Assembly: GCF_052425735.1 (NCBI RefSeq)
Contig: NC_135769.1
Span: 6,076,001-6,140,000, forward strand
Source: Oculina patagonica
Lineage: Eukaryota
Direction: 5' to 3'
Length of the DNA: 64,000 bases
Both the position numbers and the translations under genes were made by a program. Position 1 is the stretch's first letter. Every line of letters starts with the position of its first letter. Positions 38,667 through 53,600 of this stretch are shown one piece after another. The notes under the pieces were generated by a model. The model saw only the letters and a list, made by a program, of their open reading frames with translations. It was not told the origin of the DNA and did no database searches.

Positions 38667-41600
38667 TTAATGGATTCTTGTTAGTTCTTCAACAACTTTC
38701 ACCAGATCTTCTACAGTGCACTCTTTCTTCATTCCGCTACCATCGTCAATCTATCGGAAGGAATAAGTCCAAGAAGCATTAAGACAAATGCTTTTTCGTT
38801 TTAATTTTTCAAACCCATTGATAATTCATCAAGTTAAGGTGGCCCGCGGGTATTTATGAGGCTGACAGTTCCCTTTTTTAAGCGCGTTTTGAAACGGGAA
38901 AACGTGAAGCGATTGCTTAGTTTTTTGAGAATCTGAAAAAATAATGCTTAAATTATATAAAATGATAAATTTTATGGCGATCAAACGCGATTTGTTAAAG
39001 TTATGAGCGATATTTGGAAGCCTTCGTTTTTAATAAAATGCGATTATTTTGAAAATGCCACGGTGAATTTTTCTGTAATTACCCCAAAACGCTGCCAAAC
39101 AGTTGAAGTTTACTCACAACAACTTACAGGAAAATCCACTCCGTAGATTTCCCGAACGAGCGACATCTTTATTTTGCCTTTAAAAACTGTTGTGTTATGC
39201 GTCTGACTTGACCGTCGCATAAATTTGATACTTATACTAACCCAGTACCAGCCAGTTTTGAGTCTGATGTCACCTTAATCTTGTGTGTAAAAGTTAAAAA
39301 GATCGTGTATATACATCAAATGTTAGCAGTCAATAAAGATGGATGGTTTTCAGTCGAATTTTTGAAAATATCAAACAAATGACGTTATTTAGAATTGCGG
39401 AAAATTTGTCGATTTGTTTTTCATTTTTTTAAAGCTGCAGCTAGAACAGGATATTGAAAAGATTTGTGCCGAGTTTCAGCGTGTTCCTATCATACGGTTT
39501 GAAGAATTTCTGTCGGAAAGTCAGGTACATTTACTTTCCAAGATTTGGTCGCTTTGTAAACCCCGCATTTCGAATGAAATTATACTGTTGTTTTCGAAGA
39601 GAGGCGTTGCTTTCAAATTCCGCACGATCTTCTGCCACTTGGAAATAACACAGCCTGAAATAGTTACTACTAAAATGACAAATACCGTTCCTGCACATGT
39701 ATTTCCTGACGGTAGAAGATCGTGCGGAATTTGGAAGTAACACCTCTCTTCAAACAACAACAGAATAATTTCATTCGAAATGCGAGGTTTACAAAGCGAT
39801 TAGAACTTGGAAAGCAAATCTACCCGACTTTGCGACCGAAATTCTTCAAACCGTATGATAGGAACACGCTGAAACTCGGCACAAATCTTTGCAATATCCT
39901 GTTCTAGCTGCAGCTTTAAAAAAATGAAAAACAAATCGACAAATTTTCCGCAATTCTTAATAACGTCATTTGTTTGATATTTTCAAAAATTCGACTGAAA
40001 ACCATCCATCTTTATTGACTGCTAACATTTGATGTATATACACGATCTTTTTAACTTTTACACACAAGATTAAGGTGACATCAGACTCAAAACTGGCTGG
40101 TACTGGGTTAGTATAAATATCAAATTTATGCGACGGTCAAGTCAGACGCATAACACAACAGTTTTTAAAGGCAAAATAAAGATGTCGCTCGTTCAGGAAA
40201 TCTACGGAGTGGATTTTCCTGTAAGTCGTTGTGAGTAAGCTTCCAACTGTTTGGCAGCGTTTTGGGGTAATTACAGAAAAATTCACCGTGACATTTTCAA
40301 AATAATCGCATTTTATTAAGAGGGGTTTGCTCTACGGACCGACTAAGGTATGCAAGATAGCAAAGACCGATTTTCCCAAACTTTGCCAGAATAAAGGCCT
40401 CAGTAAACTAGTTCTAAAAATATAAGTTTCGGATCCTTAAGAAATTTTTTGATTTTTTAGTAGAATTTTTAATGTTTTGCCCGTGGCGGCACGTTAAATC
40501 AACGCCGAAATAGCGACTTTTGTGAAAGCTGTTGTTCATATATTAAAAGCGTCATAGAAAAAAAATAACAAGGAACTTAAAACCTTTCATTTCCTCTACC
40601 TATAAGTGGTGTCAAAATTATGTGGAACAAAAACTGGAATTTTTAACGAAATTTTCAAGTTTATACATTTTGACAGTCGTAGCAACAGCCGAATTTTGCC
40701 TAAATTCACGGGTCAAAAAATCACTCTGGTACACGACTTTACCCTTTAAGTCTATACGCCGTAGAAAGAGAAATTTCCCATCTACAGTTTCCACGAAAAA
40801 AAAATTGGGATAAACGAAACGACGAATTTTGAAAGCGTTTTGAAAATAGGTCACTCGAGTCATATGAGTGACCTTTCGACCTTCCGTGTCAATAACAACA
40901 ACTAACGGAAGGTCTTCAAATGTTACGTTTCTTCGTTAAAATACGTGTAATTTCCACTTTGTTGCATGCTTTTAAATAAAAGGAAACCTGGTTTTTTGCG
41001 GTGGAATTGCTTATTTGCTATGTTGGCGAATTTGTTCGAAACTTTCGCGAGAGTTTTGAAATGCGAGCTTATCTTCTGCTTTGAGCGGTTCCGGTACGTT
41101 GATTACCAAATTATACTTTCGAATCTGCTTTCATCGAGAATGTGGCATTTACAACGAAGTAAATACCAAATCACTGAGCAATATAGAAATATTTCTTACC
41201 TTCGTGATTTTTCCTAGTCCAGAAACCACATTATTCGTACCAAAATAGGGATCGAAATGCTTCTTCGTGTCTTCTTGTCGCACGCGATCATGTTTCAATG
41301 TGACATCCATGTTAACGATTAACTTGGCAAAACCGCATAATTCAACAGGAAGTACAGTTCACTGAGGCTTTCTTGGTAGTGCAGCAGCGCATTTTCCCGA
41401 TCTTACTTTGCATCTCAAATACTTGACGCTGTCAGCTGTGTTCTGAGATGTGATGTGAATGTGCAAAGCTAGACTGGATAACTCCAATTCACCCCGGAAG
41501 TGGCGCGGCCACGAAGCAAATTTTCAACTACCGATTATACTTGCTGTCACTCCAGTGCAGTTCATTTTGACAGAAACGACTGTGCCGGCTTTTGCTTATG

Positions 41601-50600: not shown

Positions 50601-53600
50601 CTGGTTTCCTTTTATTTAAAAGCATGCAACAAAGTGGAAATTACACGTATTTTAACGAAGAAACGTAACATTTGAAGACCTTCCGTTAGTTGTTGTTATT
50701 GACACGGAAGGTCGAAAGGTCACTCATATGACTCGAGTGACCTATTTTCAAAACGCTTTCAAAATTCGTCGTTTCGTTTATCCCAATTTTTTTTTCGTGG
50801 AAACTGTAGATGGGAAATTTCTCTTTCTACGGCGTATAGTCTTAAAGGGTAAAGTCGTGTACCAGAGTGATTTTTTGACCCGTGAATTTAGGCAAAATTC
50901 GGCTGTTGCTACGACTGTCAAAATGTATAAACTTAAAAATTCCGTTAAAAATTCCAGTTTTTGTTCCACATAATTTGAACACCACTTATAGACAGAGGAA
51001 ATGAAAGGTTTTAAGTTCCTTGGTAATTTTTTTCTAGGAAGCTTTTAATATATGAATAACAGCTTCCACAAAAGTCGCTATTTCGGCGTTGATTTAGCGT
51101 GCCGCCACGGGCAAAATATTATAAATTCTACTAAAAAATCAAAAAAATTCTTAAGGATCCGAAACTTATATTTTTAGAACTAGTTTACCGAGGCCTTTAT
51201 TCTGGCAAAGTTTGGGAAAATCGGTCTTTGCTATCTTGCATACCTTAGTCGGTCCGTAGAGCAAACCCCTCTTAAAAACGGAGGCTTCCAAAAATCGCTC
51301 GTAACTTTAACAAATCGCGTTTGATCGCCATAAAATTTATCATTTTATATAATTTAAGCATTATTTTTTCAGATTCTCAAAAATCTAAGCAATCGCTTCA
51401 CGTTTTCCCGTTTTAAAACGCGCTTAAAAAAGGGAACTGTCAGCCTCATAAATACCCGCAGGCCACCTTAAAACAAGGAAAATCATAACCGTGAAGGAAG
51501 TTTGGATACCCTGTCTTAATTCGCAAAGATTTTTTACGACTGTATTTCTCAGTTTACTCCATAGTTTTTGTTTCGATTGAAAAGATAGATCAAACACTCG
51601 AGACAGTGTTTCATCGGCTATCCAAACACCTCGAATTTCTTCAAAAAATACTCCGCTGCGCGTCGTATTTTCAACTCTCTCCTCGGTGTTTGGATATTCC
51701 GATGAAACACTGTCTCTCGAGTTTGACATTACATCTATCACATTTTACAAAGACTTTACAGTAGAACAAATTAAGAAAATGGTTAAGTAACACAAAATAT
51801 ATATCAACACTTTATAAACATGCAGCCCAAGCAAAATTGCCAAACCAGACTCACTTGTAGTCCCGAGGTCACCTCCTCCATCTTTGACCGAGGGAGGTCT
51901 AGGAAGCTTTCGATCAGATCTCCGTCCACAAAGCCGATAGCTGGCTCCGTTCTCCTTTCATTGGAAAAGCAACGCCAGGTGAATAGAGGTCAAGGAAAAT
52001 AATTGATAGTGCGCTGGACTTCGGATCGAGCGGTCGGGGTTCGAGCCCTGGGGCCCGTTTCTCGAAGGTCCCGTAAAGTTTTCGCACCCGGAAAGCCAGA
52101 GGCAAAATCCTAAACACTCATGATTACAAAGTTGTTTTATTCACATATTTTTAACATGAACAGAAGGTCCCTTCATACAAAATTTCAGGCCAATACACTT
52201 CTTCGTTCTTAAGGTACAGATGTTTTAAAATGGCTTTGCGGGCCCGTTAAGTTACCGGGGCTTTCGAGAAACGGGCCCCTGGCCGGGGACACTGCGTTGT
52301 GTTCTTGGGCAAGACACTTTACTCCGTCACAGTGTCTCATCCCACCCAGGTGTAGAAATAGCCTGTGTACAGCCGTCCCGCTCCGCTCAAAAAATCGGAG
52401 CGAGACGGCTGTACACAGGCTAGTGTAGAAATGGAGTTAAATGACGAGGCAGAGGGGTAGCGTTATCGATGGACTAGCATCCCATCTAGGAGGGAGATAA
52501 ACTAACCCTAGTCGTTTCCTGATGCTTCGGAAATCGGAGATAAGGGAAGACCTAATGGGCCACTGGGCTCTAACACAGACTAAACCTGACAGATTCAACG
52601 GAAAATTACTAACGAAGTTAATTTGTTGAAGCAATTACATCGGTAAACGAATCTAAAGGATATAATCCATGATCAATCTTTCCAACGCTCTTGATAACTT
52701 TGCTGATTTTCCCTTGGACTTGCGTCAAGAAAGTACTAAGTTCTTTGGGTAACTGGGCGACAATTCCTGTGTGTTCAAACATAGGCGGTAAGTTGTTAAA
52801 ATAGAAAGGCTTTTTAACGGCCATTCTTATTTATAGCCATGGTCATGCCTTTATGCCATCCGTGACAACAGCCTCTTTGGGTCTGTTTCTTCAGTTACAA
52901 ATCATTGCAAAACCAAGGAAACTTAGACTAGTATGCCAATATGCGGCTTATCAAACACTGGAATTCCGATTTCGAGCCCTCAGTTTCTTGAGCCTCCCGA
53001 TAACTCGAAACAAAAGTCGTTTTCAGTCGAGCACTACAATTTTACCCTCTGGTTTCTCCAACCAATTTTCGTTTCCCTTGGAGGTTCAAAGAATCGGAGT
53101 TTCACTGCACTGCCAACCTTCAGACTTCTACACGTCTGTACGAACAATGCTATTTTTTTAGATTTTGTATCTGATCAGTCACTAACATTCTATTATTTTG
53201 TAATAAGGGTTTGAGGAACCGAAACCGTCGTCACACTGGCCATATTCCTGAGTTAAACGAAGCGACGGTGAGATAGAAACAAGCAAAGAAAACCGCTCAC
53301 CAATTGTGCCATTGACGGTACCGAAAAGGATGCAACCTTGAAAAGGTGTGGAAGCTTCACCAGGGTGTTCCATGACTAGAGATCCTACGAAAAAGAAAAA
53401 AAAAAGAAGATTAGCGCGTTTATCCCTGTTACCACGACGATACGCCCTGTTATAAACGACAATCATAATTTTCTTCTCGAAACGGCTCAAGTTGTGTACA
53501 TACCAGCGCTAATCTTCCATGTATCAAAACTTCCATCCGCGGCACAAATATAAGATATTTCATATAATATTCTCTTTCATATCATTATCTTCAACGGGTA

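Follow-up and report, generated by a model that had tools for sequence, protein, structure and literature searches.

Introns absorb transposons, and nested insertions in the introns of housekeeping genes are common in plants and animals, where the layers typically carry a target duplication each and the splice sites are left untouched. Several groups of cut-and-paste transposons duplicate four bases of target on integration. The piggyBac elements integrate specifically at TTAA and use an Asp-Asp-Asp (DDD) catalytic triad, and the Sola signature, reportedly published by Bao et al. in 2009, is said to consist of a DDD triad together with a 4-bp duplication. Sola is listed as a class in Repbase (PMC4455052), and Kolobok elements are characterized by TTAA duplication, 5'-RR...YY-3' ends, and an Asp-Asp-Glu (DDE) transposase with a C/DxxH motif between the second and third catalytic residues (PMC9587614). 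Here, a nest of TTAA-flanked elements is described in the last intron of the essential DDB1 gene of the coral Oculina patagonica, within a 64,000-nucleotide stretch of contig NC_135769.1 (positions 6,076,001 to 6,140,000, forward strand; RefSeq assembly GCF_052425735.1), hereafter the window, whose own numbering is used for all coordinates. With high confidence, this intron has been enlarged about 25-fold by insertions of cut-and-paste transposons.

The end of the gene, as located in the window, is comprised of the following features:

38667-38750, minus strand: last DDB1 exon, 27 codons plus stop (translation of 38670-38750)
38751-51854, minus strand: last DDB1 intron, 13,104 bp, with GT...AG boundaries
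51855-51977, minus strand: penultimate DDB1 exon, ending in phase 0 at 51855 (translation, tblastn, and RefSeq match)

A tblastn search with the Pocillopora meandrina protein placed the 3' half of DDB1 (residues ~531-1160) on the minus strand as 16 collinear exons. All 16 are open, 90-100% identical to coral orthologues and 97-100% identical to the O. patagonica protein XP_078346353.1, and the last exon is 100% conserved relative to the Pocillopora and Orbicella peptides; the collinear similarity through to the C-terminus and the conserved intron positions mark the gene as the DDB1 orthologue. The segment 51855-51980 (minus strand) translates to the part of DDB1 that precedes the C-terminal exon and ends with ...EEVTSGLQ on a complete codon, followed by GTGAG. 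The donor GT of the last intron lies at 51854-51853 and the acceptor AG at 38752-38751, with a pyrimidine-rich tract and TAG directly upstream of the last exon at 38750. Compared with the solved human DDB1, the two terminal pieces correspond to residues 1073-1113 and 1115-1140, and the first residue of the last exon fills position 1114, so the exon join loses nothing. The RefSeq model (XP_078346353.1, P0399, "DNA damage-binding protein 1-like [Oculina patagonica]") joins 51855 to 38750 and thus spans the nest, its residues 1092-1133 mapping to 51977-51852 and residues 1133-1159 to 38750-38670, the latter with 100% identity. In P. meandrina, a spliced transcript contig (L005) directly connects the counterparts of 51855 and 38750. 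Neither a second copy of the last-exon peptide nor an alternative terminal exon was found in the window.

The other DDB1 introns seen in the window measure 0.2-1.7 kb, and the last intron, identified at the homologous codon boundary, is short in three other corals:

~0.53 kb: last DDB1 intron of Orbicella faveolata (L010)
~0.68 kb: last DDB1 intron of Pocillopora meandrina (L008)
~0.76 kb: last DDB1 intron of Porites lobata (L011)

Short genomic contigs of five further related-coral records (L002-L004, L006, L007) stop before the last exon. In O. patagonica, the nest plus one TTAA makes up 96.4% of the last intron. Measured from the outermost insertion point, the 3' splice site is 87 nt away and the 5' splice site 387 nt, and removal of the nest leaves a residual intron of 87 + 383 = 470 bp, which can be aligned with the introns of the other corals over only ~35 nt at the acceptor, Orbicella being the closest. 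The original prediction, made from the letters of the sequence, had stated that the final 27 codons lie 13,104 bp from the preceding exon and that nested transposons had expanded the intron from roughly 0.5 to 13.1 kb. The coordinates, translations and splice dinucleotides agree on the first point, and the intron sizes of the other corals support the second. Its figure of ~470 bp of intron remaining after removal of the inserts was reproduced exactly, with the correction that ~330 bp of this residue is itself an older repeat.

The local layers of the nest, from the outside inwards, are as follows:

51472-51737, continued at 38775-38837, unstranded: older interspersed repeat, the host of the foldback element (alignment continuous across the junction, to L013 17166-17489)
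38838-51467, unstranded: outer non-coding foldback element, with TTAA at 38834-38837 and 51468-51471 (inverted repeats; paralogous empty site)
40320-51271, minus strand: autonomous inner element of 10,952 bp, lodged in the foldback's right arm, with TTAA at 40316-40319 and 51272-51275

The foldback element has no coding capacity. Its own sequence is a near-perfect palindrome of 1,674 bp, with arms of ~810 bp each that are 97-99% complementary (84-99% when taken segment by segment), a 52-nt loop at 39648-39699, and GGTGGCC...GGCCACC termini. The empty site for this insertion is provided by a paralogous copy of the older repeat on the same chromosome (L013 17166-17489), which reads through a single TTAA at the homologous place. 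The older repeat also has a partial copy at L013 1845-1950 and contains an internal palindrome at 51590-51726. The inner element has its empty site within the foldback itself: when 40320-51271 and one TTAA are removed, the right arm can be matched without gaps to the left one, with the alignment crossing a single TTAA. Both TTAA duplications are demonstrated by these empty sites. With TTAA at 0.8% of the positions in the window, the chance of finding it on both flanks is about 6e-5 per element, and members of the inner family are flanked by TTAA at four independent insertions in unrelated DNA (the window, L012, L013, and L001). That TTAA could instead be an extension of the palindromic inverted repeats was considered and rejected in view of the two empty sites and of the absence of any matching 2-5-bp duplication outside TTAA, either at the foldback or at a 377-bp foldback element within the inner element. 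The inner transposon family and the unrelated foldback thus both integrate at TTAA and duplicate it.

The inner element has the termini GAGGGGTTTGCT...AGCAAACCCCTC and encloses the following features:

40320-41607, unstranded: left terminal inverted repeat, paired with 49985-51271 (1,288-1,297 nt, 97% identity)
42245-43341, unstranded: 95-bp satellite array of ~11 copies, between the transposase stop and the left terminal repeat
43425-49994, minus strand: transposase gene, open in all exons (tblastn with full-length relatives; exon model)
44406-44782, unstranded: 377-bp foldback miniature inverted-repeat transposable element (MITE), TTAA-flanked, in the intron that separates the last two transposase exons
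49107-49570 (boundaries approximate), plus strand: tRNA-derived short interspersed nuclear element (SINE) in the first transposase intron, with a 235-bp MITE inside at 49254-49488
49985-51271, unstranded: right terminal inverted repeat, with the transposase ATG (49994) just inside

The MITE within the SINE has GAGAGG...CCTCTC ends with TA on both sides, and an uninterrupted copy of the SINE at 58270-58560 reads through the MITE site (~58430) with one TA; this MITE is thus of the TA-duplicating Tc1/mariner type (Stowaway-like). The transposase ATG is situated 10 nt inside the right terminal repeat, and the left repeat (41598-41607) holds a mirror-image, inward-facing ATG. Because the start codon lies inside the right repeat, all upstream promoter sequence is duplicated at both ends of the element.

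With regard to the layers that had been predicted, the boundaries of the foldback with its TTAA duplication hold, the element at 40320-51271 is confirmed at a TTAA in its right arm, and the same is true of the third TTAA-flanked element at 44406-44782 and of the MITE inside a SINE inside a transposase intron. The further statement that every level carries an intact target-site duplication proved correct for the TTAA duplications of the foldback and of the inner element; the MITE within the SINE uses TA, and a target duplication of the SINE itself could not be defined.

Two full sister copies allow the cargo to be dated relative to the local insertions. The inner element aligns end to end with the copies in L012 (10,960 bp, 98.8% identity) and L013 (10,884 bp, 98.5%), both of which have the same termini, are flanked by TTAA and are surrounded by unrelated DNA. 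The only gaps of at least 10 columns in the three-way alignment are one 95-bp satellite unit, by which the copy number in L013 is off, and runs of 25 and 16 bp inside the MITE loop. All three copies contain the 377-bp MITE, the SINE, the MITE of the SINE, and the satellite. Since the inner MITE, the SINE and its MITE are found in L012 and L013 as well, they were carried in by the large element and are not local insertions, which settles a caveat that had been attached to the original prediction. Private substitutions number 35 in the window copy (0.3% of 10,812 aligned columns) and 32 and 67 in the other two. O. patagonica proteins annotated as "hypothetical" or "uncharacterized" that are 98-100% identical to the window transposase exons are found on at least five chromosome records, and a related element with TTAA and GAG...CTC ends occurs in a contig of another species (L001; 75-84% nucleotide identity). 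As shown by the 98.5-98.8% identity, the open reading frames and the presence on several chromosomes, the inner family is young. The 3% divergence between the terminal repeats was rejected as an insertion clock, because the differences between the arms are common to all copies. It was also observed that the L013 copy sits between a 7-transmembrane receptor gene, ~0.1 kb away, and a phosphomannomutase-like gene (L013 3624-4589 and 1-1417).

These observations support the following history with high confidence. The intron was first occupied by the older repeat of ~330 bp. The palindromic foldback of 1.7 kb entered a TTAA of this repeat, at a distance of 87 nt upstream from the 3' splice site, duplicating the TTAA, and the autonomous element of 10.95 kb went into a TTAA in the right arm of the foldback, where the TTAA was duplicated again. 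The progenitor of the inner family already contained the 377-bp TTAA MITE, the SINE with its TA MITE and the 95-bp satellite, which came along as cargo. The DDB1 locus itself underwent at most two insertions, or one if the composite moved as a unit. We infer that the splice sites and the usual branch-point zone were left untouched, that DDB1 is still spliced across the nest, and that the insertion is effectively neutral. Tolerance of the insertion in DDB1, as originally predicted, is consistent with a reading frame that is intact and with the annotated model.

The possibility that survives best beside this history is a single event, in which the large element entered the foldback elsewhere and the resulting 12.6-kb composite was mobilised into DDB1 by the foldback ends. 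Both foldback termini and the TTAA duplication are intact, nesting alone is silent on the place where the inner insertion occurred, and the identity between the foldback arms is similar to that between the inner terminal repeats (~97% in both cases). However, the window, L012 and L013 contain neither the composite nor the foldback a second time, metagenome contigs of the Joint Genome Institute (JGI) yielded no foldback either, and the inner family moves alone, as shown by the L012 and L013 copies in unrelated DNA. A non-autonomous element of 12.6 kb, laden with a passenger, would be a less efficient substrate for transposition than one of 1.7 kb. A single event is considered unlikely.

Somewhat less probable still is that the inner element, which the original prediction had assigned to Sola3, belongs to a different group, namely piggyBac, Kolobok or an undescribed TTAA-targeting superfamily; the evidence on this point comes from the transposase and the ends of the element. 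The best five-exon GT-AG model of the transposase (49994-49811, 48854-48635, 47885-46727, 46022-45029, and 44332-43425) encodes 1,154 amino acids, and the annotated sister copies add an exon at ~48262-48119 to give 1,199 amino acids (P0403, P0407 and P0410, 98-100% identical). Full-length relatives of ~1,000-1,200 amino acids align to five open blocks in the window. The family comprises 3,570 representative clusters at E<=0.001, and the relatives whose labels were seen are mostly from cnidarians, molluscs and arthropods. No Pfam transposase family was found in the window exons, in four full-length relatives or in 41 aligned members. In particular, the piggyBac domain DDE_Tnp_1_7 gave no match with the window exons (E<=1), the four relatives (E<=0.1) or the 41 aligned members (alignment A1).

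Three aspartates (D113, D196, and D237), all encoded in exon 46022-45029, are invariant in the 41 aligned sequences. In an AlphaFold model (predicted local distance difference test, pLDDT, 93; predicted template modelling score, pTM, 0.89), which adopts an RNase H-like fold, they occupy the ends of strands 1 and 4 and the beginning of the helix that follows strand 5, the canonical positions of RNase H-like enzymes. The best solved structural matches are catalytic cores of retroviral integrases, with no transposase among the matches listed. Residues A198, C200, Y201, Q230, G232 and K233 are conserved between D196 and D237, and CxxH is absent. Upstream of the catalytic core, an invariant H-C...H...C..C cluster was observed at exon residues 12-41 (45000-46022, minus strand) in 41 of 41 relatives, and is probably a zinc-binding module of the transposase family.

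TTAA duplication is common to piggyBac and Kolobok, and the GAG...CTC ends of the inner element satisfy the 5'-RR...YY-3' rule given for Kolobok (PMC9587614), as do GA...TC in this element, GG...CC in the foldback and AG...CT in the 377-bp MITE. In addition, papers mentioning Sola3 gave no details of target sequence, termini or motifs. On the other hand, piggyBac is excluded by the absence of its domain, none of the 41 family members matching it or any other Pfam transposase family, and further differences from piggyBac are the GAG...CTC termini, which are not of its CCC...GGG type, and the retroviral integrase cores as best structural matches, although TTAA-specific integration and, as predicted for the inner transposase, DDD catalysis would be common to both. 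In contrast to Kolobok, the third catalytic residue is an invariant Asp rather than Glu, and the C/DxxH motif expected between the second and third residues is absent (PMC9587614). The inner element shares terminal inverted repeats, a 4-bp target duplication, and an invariant Asp-Asp-Asp on an RNase H-like fold with Sola, together with the lack of a Pfam model and relatives abundant in cnidarians, molluscs and arthropods; it differs in its unusually long terminal repeats (1.29 kb) and in its fixed cargo of MITE, SINE with MITE, and satellite. A Sola-like assignment fits the DDD triad and the 4-bp duplication, the signature reportedly described for Sola in 2009, as well as the absence of a Pfam transposase family.

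A further possibility, considered very improbable, concerns transcripts rather than insertions. The transposase is sense-oriented with DDB1, and its exons start in phases 0, 1, (2,) 2, 0 and 1. The catalytic exon, with its acceptor at 46022, is the only one that matches the phase of the DDB1 donor at 51855, and a fusion of DDB1 residues 1-1133 to the transposase would thus be in frame. Some transcripts may therefore join this part of DDB1 to the catalytic and C-terminal parts of the transposase, in which case a fusion between a CUL4 adaptor and a transposase would be arising, or may yield truncated DDB1 through intronic polyadenylation. Two observations from the databases may be mentioned here. 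A 90%-identity cluster whose representative is Porites DDB1 includes at least nine transposase models of O. patagonica without similarity to DDB1, and the product recorded for the DDB1 gene is not the exact one of 1,159 amino acids. Both the mixing of the cluster and the mismatch of the record would be explained by a longer gene model in which DDB1 and the transposase form a chimera; none was seen.

Long near-identical inverted repeats, such as the 1.29-kb terminal repeats (97% identity) and the 0.8-kb foldback arms, are a classic source of assembly errors, and mis-joined repeats could conceal an intron that is truly short or differently arranged, the least secure feature being how the unique core enclosed by the 1.29-kb repeats is oriented. 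Such an artefact is, however, extremely improbable: all boundaries are precise to the base and have a matching TTAA duplication and an empty-site counterpart, the inner element matches two other copies in length and order, a 3% difference between the repeats suffices for resolution by long reads, and the only gap of the window is 30 kb away. Equally hard to credit is the notion that DDB1 has abandoned the distant exon, ending elsewhere or surviving as a decaying duplicate, for which the complete sense-oriented gene with polyadenylation-like signals inside the last intron might speak, because the 16 exons all have open frames and show 90-100% identity to coral orthologues, with 100% conservation of the last one in Pocillopora and Orbicella, and because, against the original prediction's concern about a different terminal exon, the window holds none and the RefSeq model uses the exon at 38750.

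Several points weigh against this history of insertions. No further copy of the foldback, by which it could be assigned to a family or superfamily, turned up in the window, L012, L013 or the JGI metagenome contigs. The inner element may have joined the foldback either before or after the foldback reached DDB1. The exon join in O. patagonica itself rests on conservation and on the RefSeq model. The Sola3 label is putative, though plausible. Comparison with related species, in which the original prediction had proposed to look for empty sites, yielded the short last intron in three corals but not an orthologous empty site, the introns of Orbicella, Pocillopora and Porites being unalignable beyond the splice sites.

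Similar repeats occur elsewhere in the gene. The preceding DDB1 intron (51990-52420) contains a further SINE, which belongs to the same broad family and is interrupted by a ~220-bp palindromic MITE (GGGGCCCGTTTCTCGA...TCGAGAAACGGGCCCC), and SINE-with-MITE nests seem to be common in the O. patagonica genome. No tRNA was called by ARAGORN in the last intron or the SINE, and no Rfam family reached its gathering score there. A tRNA-model match at 53635-53709 (plus strand), inside another DDB1 intron, scores 29.7 bits against an Rfam gathering score of 29 and was not called by ARAGORN; it is probably the head of a SINE or a tRNA pseudogene.

Compared with nested intronic insertions described elsewhere, the DDB1 nest differs in nothing essential and adds same-genome empty-site controls for both local insertions; it is an ordinary kind of event, cleanly documented. 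It provides a fully bounded example of TTAA integration by two unrelated elements, each with an empty-site control. The complete sense-strand gene inside the last DDB1 intron serves as a warning for annotation, as it may yield chimeric gene models. The intron is also a simple locus, scorable by polymerase chain reaction, at which segregation of the insertion could be followed in O. patagonica populations, and its youth makes the inner family a sensible choice for testing the activity of a group of transposases that has been little studied.

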